A stretch of DNA of 63,965 nt, the filler included, from Reticulomyxa filosa (lineage: Eukaryota; Protista; Foraminifera), in assembly GCA_000512085.1 (NCBI GenBank). It is 17 parts of 17 records of this genome, joined end to end, with 100 filler letters (N's around TTAATTAATTAA, not from the genome) between each part and the next. Parts side by side here need not be neighbours in the genome. Positions count along the whole stretch, not along the records: positions 27,270 to 31,871 come from ASPP01023179.1; 16 more parts are not named here. One strand, written 5' to 3'. Position numbers and translations under genes: made by a program. The stretch's first letter is position 1; every line of letters begins with the position of its first letter. Under the pieces are notes generated by a model. That model had not been told where the DNA came from. It did not search any database and saw only the letters and a list, made by a program, of their open reading frames with translations. Positions 5,197-31,871 of this stretch are shown here, piece after piece.

Positions 5197-6601
5197 ATGA
5201 TAACGTTTGACAATGAAAAGCAAGCCTTAACACAACTAGCAATGGTAAGCCTTATTTCAAATATTCAGAAAGTGGCTGTCTTTAGATTTTTGTTATACTT
5301 GCTACTTATTGTATATAATTACGATTGAAGCAGCTAAAAGAAGAAGAGATCCAACTAATTATTCAATATTGGATTCGAGTATTAAAGATCAAATTAGGAT
5401 GGATTCATGATTTTGACAAACTTGTTGTCAATTATGTTATGTTTTTTTGTTCATTTGTTTTTCATTCAAATGACAGCCGGTATGTTTAAATATTATTTGT
5501 TATAATTATAATTTGATACAGGCAGCTACAGTTTTCACGCTTGAAATGTTTCGTTCATCATCCAAATTACTCAATACATTCACTGGACACACACATTGTG
5601 TGTATAGTATTGATCACTCAATATTTAATGGTGAACAATTCATTTGTTCTGCATCAGGTGATAATACTATTCGTGTATGGGATATTGAGGACAATAAACA
5701 ATTTCGATCGTTCGATGGACATTCAAATGCTGTAAATTGTGTAAAATTTTCACAATATCATTATCATAATCATCGTCAAAATGTCATTTGTTCTTCATCA
5801 TGGGACAAAACCATTCGTTTTTGGGATATCAAGGAAAATCGACAATTGAAATTATTAAACGAACACACTGATGGTGTTGGTGGTATTGAATTTTCATCAT
5901 TTAGTTGTGGTAGATATCTGTGTTCTGGGTCTATTGACAAGACTATTCGTTTATGGGACATTGAAACTTCCAAATTATTGCATATTTTCAATGGACATGA
6001 AAATGGTATTTGGTGTGTTGATATTTCACCATTGCAAAGTAAAAATGATAATAATAAAAGTAGTAATATTGATATGATTGGTGGTAATGGATATACTATC
6101 TGTTCTGGGTCATTAGACACAACAATTCGTATATGGGATATTGAAACAGCCAAACAATTTATTGTATTCAAAGGACATGAAGATTATGTGATAAGTGTAA
6201 AATATGGACCAAATGAATTAAGAAATACAATATTATCTGGATCAGAAGATAAAAATGTTTGTTTGTGGGATATTCGATCTAGTCAACAAATTCAAGTATT
6301 CAGTGGCCATACAAGAAATGTGAATGCTGTTGAATATTCACCATTTGTAATAGATAATAATATTAAAGTTGATGAATGTAATGTGATATGTTCTGGATCA
6401 TTGGACAATACAATTCGTTTTTGGGATATTCGGTCAAATAAGAATGAATTATATGTTATCAATGGAGATAAAAAAGACAATGGAATATACTGTCTTGAAT
6501 TTCTACAATTAAAAAAGACCAGAAATAATAATAATGGTTGTGGCTATTGTATTAATCTATGTTATGGTTCACTGAATGGTTGTATTTACATTTGGGGATA
6601 A
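5197..6601 (+). CDS. WD40-repeat protein; exons 5197-5244, 5334-5435, 5522-6601
   Basis: About 6-7 GH...WD repeats (GHTHCVYSID..IRVWD, GHSNAVNCVKF..IRFWD, GHENGIWCVD..IRIWD, GHEDYVISVKY..CLWD, GHTRNVNAVEY..IRFWD). Two GT-AG phase-0 introns join an upstream ATG in frame. Confidence 0.92.
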
Positions 6602-6649
6602 TACTATTTTCTTATTAATAAATTTGTTGATTATTTTTAATCCAAAGCT

Positions 6650-7050
6650 ACAAGTTTTTTTATCTGGAAAAAATTTTACATCATATATTTCACTAGGACA
6701 ATCACCAAATTGTTTCATTACTACATCCTATATTACAATTCTTCCATGTGATAAATTAGATACAATATAAAAATCATTCAAGTCTATATTTGTTGCTATT
6801 ACAATTTGTTGATCATTTGGTGAATATTATGCTTTTTACTTGATAAAGTCCACTACATATTTCAATATCTTCTCCAATCCATCCTATAAGTTTGTATTGT
6901 TTTATCCTCTAAACAGACACAATATTTTTAGTATCTGAGGAACATATCATATGTGGTTATCCTGTAAATTTTGCCAATTCTTTGCTGATTTTACACTCCA
7001 TAACCAAATTGTTCTATCAATTAAATACAATTTCAACCTTTAAACGTAAG
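6650..7050 (-). pseudogene. Heavily degraded WD40-like fragment
   Basis: Reverse-strand remnants such as YSPNDQQIVIAT and SEIYDVKFFPD; no continuous ORF. Confidence 0.45.
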
Positions 7051-7169
7051 AATATCCAAAACTTCTTAAAAGTTTGATCATCTTTCTTTGTTATAAAGAA
7101 AATACAAAACAACAGTTGGTAAATTTTCCATTGATTTATTAAAAATTGAATAAATGGTTGCAAAAAAAA

Positions 7170-8100
7170 GTCAAAGTAATAATCCAAAATTGGCTTCGTA
7201 TTTTAAATGTAAAATTTGGATGGATTAACGATTTTGACAAAATTGTTTTACTTTCACATGTTATTAATATCAATTATATTTATAATATAGATTAGAGATT
7301 TCAAATTGATACAAATGTTAAGAGGGTATGATAACACAGTAAAGAGTTTGAGATTTTTATCAGATGGTAATAAAATTGTTTCAGTGTCATCAGACAAATG
7401 CAATTATTTAAAGGACATTCTGATTATATTTGTGGAGCATAATTTTCTTTTGATGGAGAAATGATTGTATCTTGTTCCTGGGATAAGACAATTCGATTAT
7501 GGAATGTAAATTCTGATAGAGAAATAATGAAATTAGAAGGATGTTCAAGTTTGGTACTTACTGTTAATTTTTCTACAGATGATAAATATATCGTATCAGG
7601 TTCATCTAACAAAATAATACAAATATGGGATGTACATTCTGAAAAATTAATAAAAATATTAATGGATCATTCAAATGAGGTTTGGAATGTGCAATTTTCA
7701 TCAGATAATCAGATAATTGTATCGGCATCTTATGATAGAACAATTGGCCTTTTGAGTGTAAAATCAAGTATAAGATTGAAAGGATTAATGGATCACTTTG
7801 ATTGTGTGACCAACAAATTTATCATATCCTGTTCATTTGATAACACAATTCAAATATGGGATACAGAAACAAGAAAAGAATTGAAAAAACTTGAAGGGCA
7901 TGCAGATATTGTAAATGATGTAAAATATTTTCCAAATGATCAAATTATAGTATCTTGTTCGGATGATAATGCAATCTGCTTGTGAGATGTACGATCAGAA
8001 TATCAAAAGTACAAAAACTAAAAGGACATAATCAAAGAATATTGTGTAAAGATATTTCACCAGATGGTAATACAATTATATCAAATTCGAATATGGAGAT
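7170..8100 (+). pseudogene. WD40-repeat pseudogene (contains ORF 7461-7985)
   Basis: IVSCSWDKTIRLWNV, IVSGSSNKIIQIWDV, LEGHADIVNDVKYFPNDQIIVSCSDD. TAA interrupts the frame just upstream of the ORF and TGA replaces a WD tryptophan at the end. N-terminal module remnant LRILNVKFGWINDFDKIV at about 7193-7250. Confidence 0.85.
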
Positions 8101-8824
8101 AATTGAATATATGCAATCTTTTTTTTTTTAAATTTCATCATTTCAAAAATTAACAAATTATATTTTTCAATAGATGCAATAATATTATCATCTTATGAAA
8201 TATTCACACTTGAGACAAAACTAAATATCATTCTAAATTTTTTGCATTTCTTTTGCTGATTCCATGATATCAAAGATAGACACACAATAATTGAGAAGGA
8301 AAAGATTTCAGAAACATTAGATTAAGGAAACATTGGGATAAACACTGGAGAAAAGCAAATGTTGAAGTTACAAAGATAGTAGAGCAGATGTTACATGAAA
8401 ATGAGCAATGATTAGTTATTGTTGCTTACAAACTCTCTGAATGTAAAGTTACAGATGTACGTGCTTTATCTTCTTTTACTACAATGACCAATAGAGATAA
8501 TATGGAAAAAAGATAATTTGAGAAATACTGCATATATATATATATATCATGAAAAGTAAATTGATAATATTGGAAGACATAATTATTGATAGAAGAATAT
8601 TTTTTAAAAGAAATATTCAATGAAGACATTATCGATTGATCATACTTATGTTGCTGTTTCATAAATTTTTGCATTGTAGAATTATATTTTTGAAGTTCAT
8701 TCATTGAACTTCAAAAAAGATTATCAAGTTTTAATGAAAACTTTAAGCCGACCAATAATGTTAAATTTTATTAATTATCTAAAAAGTTAATGACATTCAA
8801 GTTTTTATTTTATTATTTAATAAG

Positions 8825-8926
8825 ATAAATGAAAACGAAATTCCAATAATTATCCAGAATTTAATTAGAACATTACACATTAATTCTGGATATGTAAATG
8901 ATTTTGATAAATGAATTATCAATTAT
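8825..8926 (+). pseudogene. Orphan copy of the 102-bp N-terminal module exon
   Basis: AG|INENEIPIIIQNLIRTLHINSGYVNDFDK*IINY, exactly 102 bp like exon 5334-5435; internal stop, and the donor reads AT instead of GT. Confidence 0.7.
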
Positions 8927-10125
8927 ATTTGATTATTTTTATTTTAATTAAATAAAATACAAAAATAAAAAAAGCATAACATATTTGTTGTTACACAGTC
9001 AATTACATTATTAACTCATTTATTCAACTGACATTCAAAATCTATATGTTGTGTAAGATTTCATCATATTATTATAATAACAGTCGTCGCAATTTAATTT
9101 ATTCTTCATCACATGACAAAACTATCAACAATCAATGCTTGTGCATCCTTTCCGTCAATAACTTACCTTTTGACGTTAAATGAAATCGCAAAAACTGGTT
9201 TTAATGATGAATACAGTTTTTGTAAAGCATTAAAAACGATGCCAGATATATTAGTACCATGAAAGCGTATTGCAAGCAAACATTAAATTTTTTAAAAAAG
9301 GCTGTTTTAATTAGTTTGTGAGAAAAAAGAATTTACGAACAACGATTATACTAAACAAATTACAAACACAGTTCGCAATTCGTGACAACTACACAACATA
9401 AACTCATTATTTTAGGTTTTTTCAGCGGTTTTTTAAAAAGTTTGGGGACATCTTTTTTACTTAAAAACCGTAAGTTTTTATTTTTTTTCAGCACGACAAT
9501 GGACAAAGGACTACGCGAGCCATTAAAAAAATTGTTTTGTATCCTTTTTGTCGACATTTTATTGAGTTCAATACGTTTCAATCAACATTGGTCTGCTGTT
9601 TAATCATTCATTTTGTATCGTAGTAACATTGCTCAAATTTCATACTCGACAAAAAAATTTTTGCTACTTAACTTCTGTTTGCAACAACTAAAATTTTTAA
9701 AGAATTAGTGATGACAGAAGAATAAAATCTTGTAAATGTCAGAAAAATAAAGTAACTATAAGTTAATAGCGTGGCCGCATCATGTTGTGCAAAACTCTAC
9801 TAAAACACGCTTATTGGATGAAACAAAGTCATTAAAATTGGATTTATTCAAACTTCTACATAAGATCAGAAACATTTTGTTTATGTCAGGAAAAAACCAC
9901 TTTTTTTGGCATATATAATGAAAATGGAACACGGGAACTATACAAACATAAAATCAAATTTTGTACAGTCAAAATTATCTATCATTTTTGTTAGATTTAT
10001 GACGACACCAAAGAATTTATGTACAATTGCACTTGTTTTCGTAACCTGGACAAAAAACAGTACCGAAGCTGGCCAGGGGCTTTGTTAGAATCAAATTGTT
10101 CAAAGGGTAATCAAAGACATTAGCA

Positions 10126-27269: not shown

Positions 27270-27306
<37 letters not shown>

Positions 27307-27385
27307 TTTGTTTGAATTTGATTTGTAGAAAAACTAATTCACATAAATTATACGTATACAATATTTATATACGTATACGTATACT

Positions 27386-28066
27386 ATGTATGTGTACAAC
27401 AGCTTGCCTGATGTGGTTGCACAAAAGTGCAAGAATTTCAACGAGTACAATACTGAAATGGTGAAAATGGCTAAAGACGCTTTGAGTCATAGCAGATATT
27501 TTGAAGGGGATACAAAGTGGTTTGATGATAGCGATTTGCTCGATGTGAAACCTCCATTTCGATTTGAGGAGATGAACAATGTCGTGCTGCTGCAACAGGT
27601 TCGGGTCAATGTGATCTTTGATGTGGCGCACAATCCTGATGGATGCACTGCGCTATGTAATGCGATTCATAACAAGTATCCTCGACAACAATCCAATGTC
27701 GTCGTCGTGGCGGCGTTTAAGAAAGTCAAGGATGTTCGTGGGTGCTTGGATGTCTTGATGCAACATTGTCATGCTCTGCATTTTGTACAACCAATGGGTC
27801 AGCTTGATATGTGCTCCATTGAATATGCCAAAGGGGTGGTCGCTGAAATCAAGTCCCATCCTAGCAATATTGACAACGACTCGATCCTTCGCACAAGAGT
27901 CGATTTCAGTCAATGGACCAATCAACATGACCTAATAAAAATTCTTTCCTTTGAAGCACAACAACTTCGAGCTATTCCAGACAAAACACATGTATTGGTC
28001 ATTTGTGGTACTTTCGGTTTGATGAAACCTTGTCTGGATGCTTTGCTTTTTTTACAACAAAAGTAG
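27386..28066 (+). CDS. folC: Folylpolyglutamate synthase/dihydrofolate synthase C-terminal domain (last exon, 5'-truncated)
   Basis: PPFRFE..VIFDVAHNPDG, KKVKDV and VLVICGTF correspond to the Mur-ligase C-terminal motifs of FolC (pGRxE, lDxAHNpxg, lvxGS). Confidence 0.75.
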   Translation: MYVYNSLPDVVAQKCKNFNEYNTEMVKMAKDALSHSRYFEGDTKWFDDSDLLDVKPPFRFEEMNNVVLLQQVRVNVIFDVAHNPDGCTALCNAIHNKYPRQQSNVVVVAAFKKVKDVRGCLDVLMQHCHALHFVQPMGQLDMCSIEYAKGVVAEIKSHPSNIDNDSILRTRVDFSQWTNQHDLIKILSFEAQQLRAIPDKTHVLVICGTFGLMKPCLDALLFLQQK

Positions 28067-28529
28067 ATGCGTTAATTTTAAAAATTATTTGAATTTTTAA
28101 TTCTATCATCGTGGTTAGTAGTCAAATACAAATCCAATTCGTTCTTTTTTTTTGTGTTTTGGCTACCTAATACAAATTTTGAAGATGGCAATTAGTAAAT
28201 AATGACGCAACCTTGATAACGAATTTTTATTCTGTTTTACATGGACCAGAAAATCTCATATTTAATGTTGCAAGCTCTTATCTTTTTAAAGTTTTTAAAT
28301 TAGCAACCTTTTTTATTTCGTTTGCGCATTTATTAAACACTGTCCTTATGATATTCCATTTTCCAGCACCAATTCAACTGTTACTTTGTTTTAGTATCAA
28401 CAATCCAAGGCTATTTAACTTTAAAAAAGAAAGAATTTGACATGGTCTTTGACATATTACAAATTACAAGATGAAGACAAACTACCAACACAAAACAAAT
28501 TTTTCAACACATGTCAGATTAAAAAAAGA

Positions 28530-29483
28530 TCACAAGGTTTTTCTGGCAACAAAAACCATGTCATATGAAGTAGTGTCTTGTGTTTCAACACAATACCATT
28601 CACCATTTTTACTCCTTCGAATTTCTTGTCGAACATCATTCAACATTTGCTTAAATGGATATCCACTTTTATATTTGGACATTACAACACTTTTCATGCA
28701 ATTACTCAACAATGAAAAATCACCAATTTGATGTCCTTGTGTAGTTGACCAAATCATCAAAAATCCATCATCATTATGTCCAAGTGACTGCATATCTTCC
28801 TTTTTTCCTCTCATCGTTGTTGTCATATGAGCAGTTGGAGTGTTTTTACCACGACACATATCAATAATAAATATTTTTGGAAAATCTTTAAAAGATTCCA
28901 TTTTATCACAATTAAATGATTCACGTATTTCATCAATTGATAAAGATTTTCCATCACTTGTCACCAACATATTTCCATTCTCTCCATGTCCACAAATAAT
29001 CATTATCAATCCATCATATTTGTGAGTATTGTTATGAAGTTCATAATTTGAAATTAATCTGGCCAGAAATGATTGAATATCTTTTTTTGTCATTTGTTGA
29101 GGTTGATTGCACACAAATTCATAATTCAATTCTTGTTCAAATAATTTTTTGAAATTCTTGACATCTTTTTTTTTCACATTTGGAATATTAGGCCATTTTG
29201 TGTTATCAACATATTTACTAATTCCAATCATTGCAACCAATGCATTTTTTATTATCTTGTGTTTTTCACTTATTATTGGTTGTTGTAAGGATTTCCAACG
29301 TATTTTAAATGAAGGCTCTTTCATCATAAAAACTTGTTTAACTGCGTCATCGGAATCAATAATATTGTTCTTCATATCGGCTAATTCGAATGTCAAATTT
29401 AAACAAGAATAACTCTGACGAATCAACTCTTCCAATGTTAGATCTTTCATCTTTATCAATTTCTTCATTTCATTCACTATCAC
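28530..29483 (-). CDS. Caspase-like (peptidase C14, paracaspase-like) domain; last exon of the TPR-protease locus
   Basis: NALVAMIGISKY (first strand), MIICGHGENG (catalytic His, codon 28986-28988), PKIFIIDMCRG (catalytic Cys, codon 28854-28856), DGFLMIWSTTQG (p10-like strand). Confidence 0.88.
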   Translation of the reverse strand: MIVNEMKKLIKMKDLTLEELIRQSYSCLNLTFELADMKNNIIDSDDAVKQVFMMKEPSFKIRWKSLQQPIISEKHKIIKNALVAMIGISKYVDNTKWPNIPNVKKKDVKNFKKLFEQELNYEFVCNQPQQMTKKDIQSFLARLISNYELHNNTHKYDGLIMIICGHGENGNMLVTSDGKSLSIDEIRESFNCDKMESFKDFPKIFIIDMCRGKNTPTAHMTTTMRGKKEDMQSLGHNDDGFLMIWSTTQGHQIGDFSLLSNCMKSVVMSKYKSGYPFKQMLNDVRQEIRRSKNGEWYCVETQDTTSYDMVFVARKTL

Positions 29484-29614
29484 ATATGCTTGTTGCTTGT
29501 TATATGTTTTTATTATTGTTTAATTTTTTTATAAGTGCAAAAGTTAAACAAATGTACAATAATTAAAAAACAAACTTCATTTTCTTTTTTTTCTTGCATG
29601 TGGTCTTGATTATT

Positions 29615-30926
29615 CTATTTCAATACACACATATTGTTTTGTTTGACAATTAAATGAAAAAAACAAAAATTAATAAAAAAAAGCAAAACATCATTGATTG
29701 AATGATAATCAATATATGATTCAATAGCACCACGAAGTACAGAAATATCTTCATTCTTCAAATCATGTTTCCATTTATTTTGATTCAATAACCATGTTCT
29801 AAAATCATTTCGTGTTAATCGTTCATATTTTTCAATAATTTCAGCTTTATCATTTTGATTTCTTTCTTCCCACCATTCTACTACTTTGCTATTATGCGAA
29901 ATTCCCGAGTTGTAGTGTAAAGCGGCAAACCGAATGTAAGAATTATCTAATTCTTTTGGAAAAAAAAGTTGGAAGCCTTTTTGGAGATATTCAATTGGTT
30001 TGTCGATTTTTTTTTTTTTTTTATTGGTGTGAGCGATTCCCAATTTTTTGTATAAATTATTAACATCAATGTGATTTGATCCCAATTTATCTAACTTTAT
30101 TTGTAACGCTTTTTCATAATATTCGATTGATTTATCATATTGTGCTTTCTCATAATAAACTTTTCCCAATCTGTTGTAAGAATCAGCAATACTAATGTGA
30201 TTATTACCTAATTTTTCTAACCGAATTTGTAACGCCTTTTGGTGATACTCAAGTGCCTTGTCGTATTCTCCTTTCTTGCAATGAGCAATTCCCAATTCAT
30301 TGTATGAATTACCAATATCAATGTGATCTGGTCCCAATTTATCTAATCTTATTTTTAATGCTTTTTCATGATATTCAACTGCTTTGTCATATTCTCCTTT
30401 ATTATTATAAGTAATTCCTAAATTATTGTATAAAGCAGCAAGCTTTGATATGATCATTGCCTAATCTTTTTGACCAAATAATTAACGCTTTTTGATAAAA
30501 TTGAAGTGCTTTGTCGTATTCTTCTTTATTGCTGTGAACAATTCCCAATTGATTATATGACCAACCAACATCGATGTGATATGATCCCAATTTATCTAAT
30601 CTTATTTTTAATGCTTTTTCATAGTTTTCAATTGACTTGTCGTACTCTCCTTTGCTTTTATGTGCATTTCCCAAATTATGGTATAAAGTGGCAACGCCAA
30701 TGTCATCCGGTACCAATTTACCTAATCTTATTTTTAATGCTTTTTCATGATATTCAATTGCTTTGTCATATTCTCCTTTATTATTATAAGTAATTCCTAA
30801 ATTATTGCAGGAAACAGCAACTTTGATATGATCATTGCCTAATTTTTCTGATCGAATATCCAGCGCTTTTTTATAACATTCAAGTGCTTTGTCGTATTCT
30901 TCTTTTTTGTAGTGGGCAATTCCCAA
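29615..30926 (-). CDS. Tandem 42-aa TPR array plus small helical domain; one +1 frameshift at about 30442
   Basis: About 8 units of LGxxxxxKGEYDKAxEYYEKALxIRLxKLGxxHxxxAxSYNx spread over ORFs 30423-30926 and 29615-30457, upstream of the caspase exon on the same strand. Confidence 0.88.
29950..30926. repeat. 126-bp tandem repeat encoding TPR units
   Basis: 30343-30465 and 30722-30843 are nearly identical at an offset of 379 bp (3 x 126 + 1). Confidence 0.9.
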
Positions 30927-31836
30927 AAAATCGTATAACTCACCATCATCAACGTCTATGATTTTCTATCGAAAATTTTGGTTCAGTTCTGTTACTGAGG
31001 GGCACTTCCGGGAATGTTACTTCCAGTGGTAAAGGGGATGGTTCAGGGGATAGTTCTTTAAGGTAAGCAGTAACTTGAAAAGACATGTTTGTCTAAAGCC
31101 AAACAATTGATGTATTTAAAAAACTCCAAAATTTCTTCCTTTGATTTCTCCCTTTTTTGTTTTTGTTTCTTTGTCCACGAATTTGTAGACATATCCAAAT
31201 TGAATGTAAATTAAATGCGTCTGTTCAGATGATAATACCTCTTTGAAAAAATATTACCATACCATCATGGTGAACTTTTAAAACGTTGTAAATTGTTTTT
31301 TTTTTTGAGCTAGTTTCAATGTCAATTCTTGCAACTTTTGCCCCTTTCAGTTGTAATTTACATTGAAGAAAGAAAGTGTTTTGAAGTTGAAGCAAAAATG
31401 AGAGACGTGGAAACTATCAAAGAGGATCGATAAACAAAAAAAAGAAAATGTGTTCGTGTTGAGGTATTGTGACGTTGCAAAATACATTATATTTTTATCA
31501 AGCATCAATCTGTGTCCGATATCTTGGACCATAGATTGGAAGAAAGTTGAAGTATAAAACCTCTGCACTCTGTTTATTTGAGTTGCAGTAAGTAGGATTT
31601 TTTGGGGGGAGGAGGGAGGAGGGAAGAAGAAAGGGGCATAACGGAGGGGGGGGCCTTCATTCGAGTTCGACTCAAAGGTTTGGCGACACAATGTTGGCCA
31701 TTCTTTGTTTTTTTTCGTCGCCATCTCCCATGAACTATAAAACAAACAAACAAACAAACAATTAAAACGTTGGAATATAACGTTACAATATTTTTCCAGA
31801 AAATGCAAGGTCCATTTGAAAAATAAGGACATACAT

Positions 31837-31871
<35 letters not shown>

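Follow-up and report, generated by a model that had tools for sequence, protein, structure and literature searches.

A probable Reticulomyxa filosa gene family coupling variable binding domains to a caspase-fold protease, with a probably damaged TPR-bearing copy

Does a tetratricopeptide-repeat (TPR) array that lies just upstream of a caspase-fold protease in the foraminiferan Reticulomyxa filosa form one sensor-effector gene with it, and is that gene intact? We examined this question in a window of 63,965 nucleotides (the whole stretch of R. filosa DNA that was analysed), in which the locus occupies a 4,602-bp contig (ASPP01023179.1 of assembly GCA_000512085.1) at positions 27270-31871. The initial annotation had described a variable TPR array joined to a paracaspase-like protease. 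We consider it reasonably probable that the locus belongs to a multigene R. filosa family in which a variable N-terminal binding domain is followed by a four-helix "WW" module, a beta-grasp domain and a caspase-fold protease, an architecture drawn from the Kelch, TPR and TRAF-type zinc-finger (zf-TRAF) partners found in paralogues, and that the window holds a probably damaged copy.

The gene lies on the minus strand and runs from the TPR array through a helical exon, an intron, a micro-exon and a second intron into the last exon. The helical segment KVVEWWEERNQ...YIDYHSIND had been described as joined to the TPR frame, and this was borne out at 29887-29690, where an exon of 66 aa (KVVEWWEERNQ...WLLNQNKWK...YIDYHSIND; alignment A2) is encoded. 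Two short intron-like gaps had also been proposed; both have GT-AG borders, and the second lies at 29575-29496, slightly off the earlier limits of 29520-29577. Intron 1 (29615-29689, 75 nt) and intron 2 (29496-29575, 80 nt) flank a micro-exon of 13 codons (NNQDHMQEKKENE, 29576-29614), and the reading frame is restored through both of them into the last exon (29495-28530). That exon encodes a beta-grasp (ubiquitin-like) prodomain (29255-29495, QQAYVIVNE...FKIRW), recognised by alignment A1, AlphaFold2 (AF2) models and fold searches, followed by a Peptidase_C14 domain with p20-like and p10-like parts (28533-29254) and a stop codon at 28532-28530. The 317-aa minus-strand C14 open reading frame (ORF) is the annotated product P0001, and the G+C content is 0.22-0.32 across the protease gene. 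The exon joins agree with those of paralogues: the annotated splice of P0038 (HSIND/NNQDH) is the predicted intron 1 join, the model of P0002 contains the predicted intron 2 join (KKENE/HQAYVIVDE), and the same micro-exon linker occurs in P0002, P0011 and P0022. Locus L004, which encodes P0038, was 84% identical to the window in DNA over 29877-29468; by segment, the helical exon (92%) and the micro-exon (90%) aligned without gaps, and the introns (88% for intron 1 and 80% for intron 2) aligned with indels.

Thirty-six further R. filosa proteins were 44-78% identical to the window C14 ORF. The helical module, linker, beta-grasp domain and C14 domain occur together in one annotated protein in P0004, P0005, P0009, P0010, P0016, P0041, P0055 and P0057, the first five sharing a chain of a short charged linker, a YVIVDE...FKILW segment and C14. 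The domains upstream of this chain vary. By Pfam, Kelch repeats accompany the helical module and C14 in P0041 and P0057 (by eye also in P0055 and P0064) and accompany helical fragments in P0044, P0046 and P0069, and P0059 combines zf-TRAF with the helical module and a C14-like domain. A Kelch gene ends ∼330 bp upstream of the P0005 helical exon at locus L002, and in the single model of P0010 an acidic linker connects a Kelch-like end to the helical module. TPR arrays were found at two other loci: P0068 (L005) has a TPR_12 array and the helical module and runs off the contig end, and at L004 (P0038) TPRs and an intron precede the helical exon, which is followed by the same intron 1, by the micro-exon and by the beginning of the beta-grasp exon. 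Kelch is thus the majority partner of the helical module and TPR a minority one, and P0041 (RFI_21820) has a tandem pair of WW modules. The proposal that the TPR, helical, alpha/beta and C14 parts form one architecture is upheld by these comparisons, in which paralogue models join the helical module to C14, and L004 and L005 join TPRs to the helical module. The TPR-to-helical link is not a one-off, and because L004 and L005 carry TPRs it cannot be said that paralogous proteases never do. The window copy itself shows the helical WW module, linker micro-exon, beta-grasp and C14 domains and the conserved intron positions of the family.

An exhaustive hidden Markov model (HMM) search with the helical module (alignment A2) returned 42 representative proteins, and all 20 that were looked up are from R. 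filosa, which suggests that the cassette is restricted to this organism. The helical module has no Pfam match, and Pfam scans of the window ORFs and of a set of family members revealed no NTPase domain of the NACHT or NB-ARC kind. A word-based search for further TPR-type loci with the helical part found P0038 only. Caspase homologues of R. filosa have already been published (Klim et al. 2018, PMC5982838); P0001 is one of them, and one R. filosa homologue is used as an outgroup in PMC10959488. As far as the accessible portions of these two papers go, they cover only the C14 domain and its phylogeny, and the searchable literature, whose coverage is incomplete, yielded no account of an architecture that combines Kelch, TPR or zf-TRAF with the helical and beta-grasp modules. 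Several points weigh against our reading of the family. The paralogue gene models are computational annotations, the exon joins and the TPR-C14 linkage are predicted from genomic sequence alone, and among the contigs found, that of the window alone has a C14 domain together with a TPR array, L004 and L005 ending before the protease. The window exons were searched separately.

The initial annotation had placed an alpha/beta segment and then a C14 protease with intact His (ICGHGE) and Cys (IDMCRG) motifs after the gaps, and the last exon encodes exactly these. The C14 domain scored 76.7 bits against PF00656 (cut-off 21.4; E 2.9e-21) and had no match in NCBIfam. The catalytic His codon (ICGHG) lies at 28986-28988 and the D-M-C codons of IDMCRG at 28854-28862, with the catalytic Cys codon at 28856-28854; the two motifs align with SHGEEG and QACRG of caspase-3. 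A single-sequence search of the PDB was led by caspase-3, -6, -7 and -8 (E 2.5e-07), and a family-profile search was led by caspase-3 (E 4.8e-11). The AF2 model of the window ORF (beta-grasp domain and caspase core) had a predicted local distance difference test (pLDDT) score of 82.1 and a six-strand core, with residues 218-241 disordered. Consistent with a caspase/hemoglobinase fold, the top 50 Foldseek matches of this model were all animal caspases, CED-3 included (E about 1e-11 to 1e-12; template modelling score, TMt, 0.65-0.81), and no metacaspase appeared among them. In the accessible text of PMC5982838, which gives no detail on paracaspases, the R. filosa proteases group with animal caspases at 92-95% bootstrap. 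By sequence and predicted structure, then, the protease is caspase-like by descent and closest to animal caspases.

The class originally assigned, paracaspase-like, does not survive these comparisons. A relationship to MALT1 would be suggested by the resemblance of D-M-C-R to the MALT1 active-site motif and by the acidic residue at the caspase Gln position. However, MALT1 was absent from the best 60 PDB sequence and profile matches and from the top 50 Foldseek matches, all of which were caspases, Pfam found no death domain or Ig domain in the window ORFs, the residue between the Asp and the Cys varies freely in the family (A/I/V/M/T/S/L), and the published tree (PMC5982838) places the R. filosa proteases with animal caspases. 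We regard a paracaspase identity as very improbable.

The caspase-type protease nevertheless differs from strict caspases around its S1 pocket. Asp occupies the Gln position of QACRG in 38 of the 40 family members; the catalytic Cys is kept in 36, and GHG in 35. The caspase S1 arginines had been reported as not evident in the window, and we likewise could not find them. At the first position (Arg179, caspase-1 numbering) the aligned residue is Pro, Lys or Ser, and in the L3 loop 32 of 34 members have an Asp, and no Arg, at the fifth residue past the conserved Gly in which strand beta-5 terminates. By a count from the end of this strand, the Asp plausibly corresponds to Arg207 of caspase-3 (Arg341 in caspase-1 numbering); because HMMER gapped the loop differently, the correspondence is no firmer than plausible. 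The basic pocket of strict caspases (Gln, Arg179 and Arg341) was therefore not found, with the L3 loop alignment uncertain, and without a conserved Arg at the S1 positions Asp specificity is unlikely. The predicted disordered intersubunit linker (28773-28844, ORF residues 218-241, pLDDT <50) contains an Arg-Gly (TTTMRGKKE), and an Arg-Gly recurs in the otherwise variable p20-p10 linker of 29 of the 40 members. Within C14, a basic pocket combined with Asp specificity is confined to caspases, all other characterised members having acidic pockets and preferring basic P1 residues (PMC5756287). From this pattern, the Asp at the Gln position, the missing S1 Arg and the linker Arg-Gly, we predict that the intact members have an acidic pocket, that they prefer Arg or Lys at P1 and that they process themselves at the Arg-Gly.

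Residues of the catalytic dyad have been lost in some members. P0003 (L006, 10-1002) has DLHRG, P0020 has DIGRG and CAN in place of GHG, and P0018 and others have DIPRG or DISRG. The Cys is lost in 4 of the 40 members. Members that have lost catalytic residues are probably pseudo-proteases, or they may be decaying copies.

The prodomain between the helical module and the protease was examined in an AF2 model of residues 112-275 of paralogue P0010 (pLDDT 88.8), which shows the four helices of the helical module and then a beta-beta-alpha-alpha-beta-alpha-beta beta-grasp domain. Foldseek gave DFF45 CIDE-N (1ibx_B) as the best match of the prodomain model (E 0.018, TMt 0.57, root-mean-square deviation 2.7), with ubiquitin, PB1 and SUMO next, and in a VIA search, which is independent of Foldseek, ISG15, ubiquitin, DREP3, Par3-NTD, PB1 and CIDE-A were tied at Z 7-8. 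These models indicate a ubiquitin-like fold. That the domain oligomerises head to tail in the manner of CIDE-N or PB1 is an attractive, unproven possibility: such domains (CIDE-N of DFF40/DFF45 and DREP, and PB1) do oligomerise head to tail, and DREP3, CIDE-A, Drep4 and PB1 reach Z 7.1-7.6 against the R. filosa prodomain. Against it, the prodomain matches them no better than it matches ubiquitin or SUMO, the Foldseek E of 0.018 and the tied Z values do not rise above the general ubiquitin-like background, and Pfam found no CIDE-N or PB1 in the prodomain.

We then considered the TPR array. It comprises eight full 42-aa TPR_12 units in tandem (30941-29933) and a partial ninth that extends to 29888, for ∼8.5 units, and Tandem Repeats Finder (TRF) reported a period of 126 nt with 7.1 copies. 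Units 1-4 occupy 30438-30965 in frame A, which is open after a stop codon at 30968-30966 (141.9 bits, E 7e-42), and units 5-8 with the truncated ninth (RFAALHYNSGISHNS) occupy 29888-30436 in frame B (153.6 bits, E 1.6e-45; TPR_12 cut-off 30.1). The earlier count of about eight tandem units thus stood, and the statement that all of them run in frame did not, as a 1-nt frameshift (30436-30440) separates units 4 and 5. The extra C lies near 30438, where the sequence reads 'AAAGCTTGCTGC' compared with 'AAAGTTGCTG' at the equivalent place of unit 1, and ORFs 30926-30423 and 30457-29615 overlap in different frames. The helical segment is in frame with units 5-9 only. An ATG at 30457-30455 opens the downstream frame (MIISKLAALYNNLG...), and no in-frame ATG was found at the 5' end of the array in the open frame of units 1-4. 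Unit 8 contains an A16 homopolymer (30007-30022) that encodes NKKKKKIDKP in place of the usual NKGEYDKA.

The initial annotation had proposed that repeat shuffling diversifies the TPR surface. Pairwise identity among the units is 60-89%, and nonsynonymous differences exceed synonymous ones, an excess that fits relaxed constraint as well as diversifying selection. Units 2 and 5 (30690-30815 and 30311-30436) are 89% identical in DNA with 10 nonsynonymous and 1 synonymous codon differences, and units 1 and 4 (30816-30941 and 30438-30563) are 78% identical with 16 nonsynonymous and 2 synonymous; these identities suggest a partial three-unit duplication within the array. A TPR search did not identify a donor; identity was 59-62% to R. 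filosa TPR proteins and 45-56% to a large number of generic bacterial TPR_12 proteins. We also considered whether the truncated ninth unit could be spliced out with a 42-nt intron (about 29933-29891), for which GTTTG and AG motifs are present. We did not adopt it because it would be half as long as the other introns, and because the frame survives the removal of any 42 nt.

At its junction with the helical exon the window copy departs from its paralogues. An intron lies 5-8 codons before the WW motif at L004, L005, L001 and L002, and the TPR-type loci L004 and L005 have a conserved cap after the last TPR (...KIF.QKFG.QH.KTQ...LEKIN). In the window the cap and the preceding intron are absent, the degenerate ninth unit ends after its first helix (GISHNSK) and is joined straight to VVEWW, and DNA similarity to every paralogue begins at 29877. 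The GISHNS/KVVEWW junction had been called abrupt; it is indeed atypical when set against the cap and intron of the paralogues, whereas the TPR-helical link itself recurs at L004 and L005. Because the cap and the intron before the helical exon are missing, the window copy looks rearranged. Upstream, the closest TPR paralogues (P0075, P0100, P0108 and P0141) and P0068 share an unannotated N-terminal domain of ∼200 aa, which tblastn with the P0068 query did not find in 30966-31871, upstream of the window array. This domain, with no Pfam match at E up to 1, extends over P0068:1-262, P0075:1-205, P0100:1-150, P0141:1-200 and L005 3704-4490; it has the pattern ..GIIVISTN.DQFAK...ITIDGCVYV.DCVI.G.G...ITQ.. 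and precedes the TPR array, in P0068 too. A 161-aa ORF at 31347-31832 also had no Pfam match.

The two halves of the window copy therefore differ in condition. In the 5' half, no intact N-terminal part was found, given the frameshift, the absence of an ATG, the truncated last unit and the lack of cap and intron, and this half is probably rearranged and decaying. The 3' half is intact, with canonical splice sites, the His/Cys dyad and purifying selection on the C14 exon, for which the ratio of nonsynonymous to synonymous substitution rates (dN/dS) was 0.21 (vs L001) and 0.26 (vs L002), compared with 0.22 between L001 and L002; such ratios indicate that the exon is under purifying selection. To the damage of the 5' half we also count the beta-grasp domain, which has an 11-aa deletion of residues that are present in all of the A1 paralogues spanning the region. 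On balance, we lean, with somewhat better than even confidence, toward at least the TPR part of the window copy being non-functional.

Two other accounts of the window copy have to be weighed against the picture of a gene damaged at its 5' end. It could still be functional, either if the frameshift at ∼30438 is an assembly or sequencing error, so that the translated product takes in an upstream exon and ∼8.5 TPR units, or if translation starts at the ATG at 30457 and gives a shorter product of ∼4.5 TPR units with the helical, beta-grasp and C14 parts (∼590 aa). Both variants count against the idea of damage: the assembly is fragmentary, which is why the frameshift could be a sequencing error, and a single frame is open from ATG 30457 through the helical exon to 29690. 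Downstream of it both introns have GT-AG borders and restore the frame, the C14 dyad is intact, the dN/dS of 0.21-0.26 equals that between intact paralogues, and the beta-grasp domain is still modelled as folded despite its deletion (AF2 pLDDT 75-86). Yet the extra C lies outside any homopolymer, unit 8 is degenerate and has its A16 run, the junction lacks the cap and intron of L004 and L005, and 30966-31871 lacks the N-terminal domain that the closest TPR paralogues share. Between the helical exon and its L004 counterpart there are 11 nonsynonymous and 3 synonymous codon changes, and the public annotation records a 312-aa C14 ORF alone. A functional window copy thus seems doubtful to us, though it keeps appreciable weight.

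The join of array and protease could also be an artefact, a chimeric contig assembled from repeated sequence, with the true protease gene preceded by a different domain or by no domain at all. Fragmentation of the assembly is high, and paralogue contigs often end at or near repeat arrays; the window's similarity to all paralogues starts abruptly at 29877, and the junction falls in the middle of a TPR unit. Such a misassembly is nevertheless improbable, since the frame is open across the junction for 280 codons, L004 and L005 provide independent TPR-to-helical links, and the junction itself has no repeat in common with another contig through which the two could have been wrongly joined. A damaged copy of a genuine family gene remains the reading that we prefer.

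Other features of the contig and of the relatives were recorded. The contig starts with T25 (27270-27294) and ends with A34 (31838-31871), and the assembly may have broken at these homopolymers; on the contigs of P0003 and P0022 the sequence starts with the protease gene. A 226-aa ORF on the plus strand (27386-28066), convergent with the 3' end of the protease gene, has a G+C content of 0.42-0.46 compared with about 0.27-0.31 in the remaining contig and a weak FolC/Mur_ligase_C match (TIGR01499, E 9.5e-08; PF02875, E 4e-05, under the cut-off), and it resembles the C-terminal portion of a gene of the folylpolyglutamate synthase type. In P0059 (RFI_37412) the WW module comes after a TRAF-type zinc finger, and the module is also present in partial models named HSP70 (P0066), exopolyphosphatase (P0067) and kinesin family member 10 (P0072), which may be real fusions or annotation chimeras. 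The only C14 relative from outside R. filosa in the word search was P0034, a Joint Genome Institute (JGI) metagenome protein of 299 aa with 45% identity over 45% of the query and a long insertion in its p20-p10 linker; it may come from another foraminiferan or rhizarian. Contigs with caspase-like genes (L001 108-3181, minus strand, and 6540-9481, plus strand; L003 8654-12581) also bear a gene with weak nSTAND3 matches and large WD40-repeat genes, and the annotated protein P0037 is chimeric, with WD40 repeats and a fragment of a caspase. These neighbours may reflect a clustering of repeat and STAND-type genes, or the mere abundance of WD40 in the genome.

Among known systems, animal caspases (MEROPS C14A; caspase-3, -7, -8, -9 and CED-3) give the best sequence, profile and predicted-structure matches to the R. 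filosa proteins and share their six-strand core, the order of p20-like part, disordered linker and p10-like part, the His-Gly and Cys-Arg-Gly motifs and the presence of an N-terminal prodomain. They differ in having QACRG, where R. filosa has D-x-CRG in 38/40, in having a CARD or DED prodomain instead of the four-helix module and beta-grasp domain, and in being processed at Asp-X in the linker, where the R. filosa family has its conserved Arg-Gly; unlike them, R. filosa also places a Kelch or TPR repeat domain on the same polypeptide. By analogy, MALT1 would share with the R. filosa protease the D-x-C-R at the catalytic Cys, an expected basic P1 preference and, plausibly, activation by induced proximity. 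It has death and Ig domains, unlike the window ORFs as scanned with Pfam. Metacaspases and prokaryotic orthocaspases are similar in the fusion of C14 to TPR or WD40 repeats (PMC5756287; PMC3501461), as in the cyanobacterial orthocaspases with TPR or WD40 domains (PMC5756287), and their acidic pocket and Arg/Lys preference would be shared by the R. filosa family if our sequence-based prediction is correct. They differ in that the R. filosa catalytic domain groups with caspases by sequence and fold, and in that the R. filosa repeats are N-terminal, with the helical and beta-grasp modules between repeats and protease.

Fusions of repeats to caspase-fold domains also act in defence or cell death in bacterial TPR-CHAT proteins (Csx29, Craspase) and in fungal NLR-like proteins with C14-like effectors. 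These systems resemble the R. filosa family in concept, in that a caspase-fold protease and a TPR scaffold or putative sensor are combined in a single chain, and they belong to another C14/CHAT subfamily; for R. filosa we detected neither a CRISPR partner nor an NTPase of the NACHT or NB-ARC type. The family differs from the known repeat-caspase fusions in its caspase-type domain with an apparently acidic pocket, its private helical exon and beta-grasp domain instead of a death fold, and its lack of a STAND NTPase.

A working scheme can be drawn for intact family members. The repeat domain would bind a partner or ligand, the helical and beta-grasp modules would bring protease domains together, the zymogen would be cut at the conserved Arg-Gly of the disordered p20-p10 linker, and the enzyme would cleave after Arg or Lys, not Asp, because Asp occupies the QACRG Gln position and probably also the L3-loop Arg position. 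In a more far-reaching reading, R. filosa would have evolved its own single-chain, NTPase-free sensor-adaptor-protease proteins, in which diversified Kelch, TPR or TRAF-type zinc-finger domains detect ligands, the lineage-specific helical and CIDE-N/PB1-like beta-grasp modules polymerise, and an Arg/Lys-specific, caspase-descended protease is activated, as an independent rhizarian counterpart of the inflammasome or apoptosome for defence or cell death in a giant multinucleate cell. We offer this last reading as speculation and rate its probability as low.

Because the window copy is probably damaged it is of limited value, and experiments would be better directed at intact paralogues such as P0041, P0055 and P0057. 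As the cassette architecture suggests, exon shuffling may have attached different binding domains to a protease that would be activated by proximity. The same logic operates in animal, fungal and bacterial death and defence systems, and here neither a death fold nor a STAND NTPase would take part. True caspases are generally considered confined to animals, R. filosa being the reported protist exception. If the acidic S1 pocket and cleavage after Arg or Lys prove true, the R. filosa enzymes would bridge caspases and other C14 proteases, and they would bear on when Asp specificity arose.

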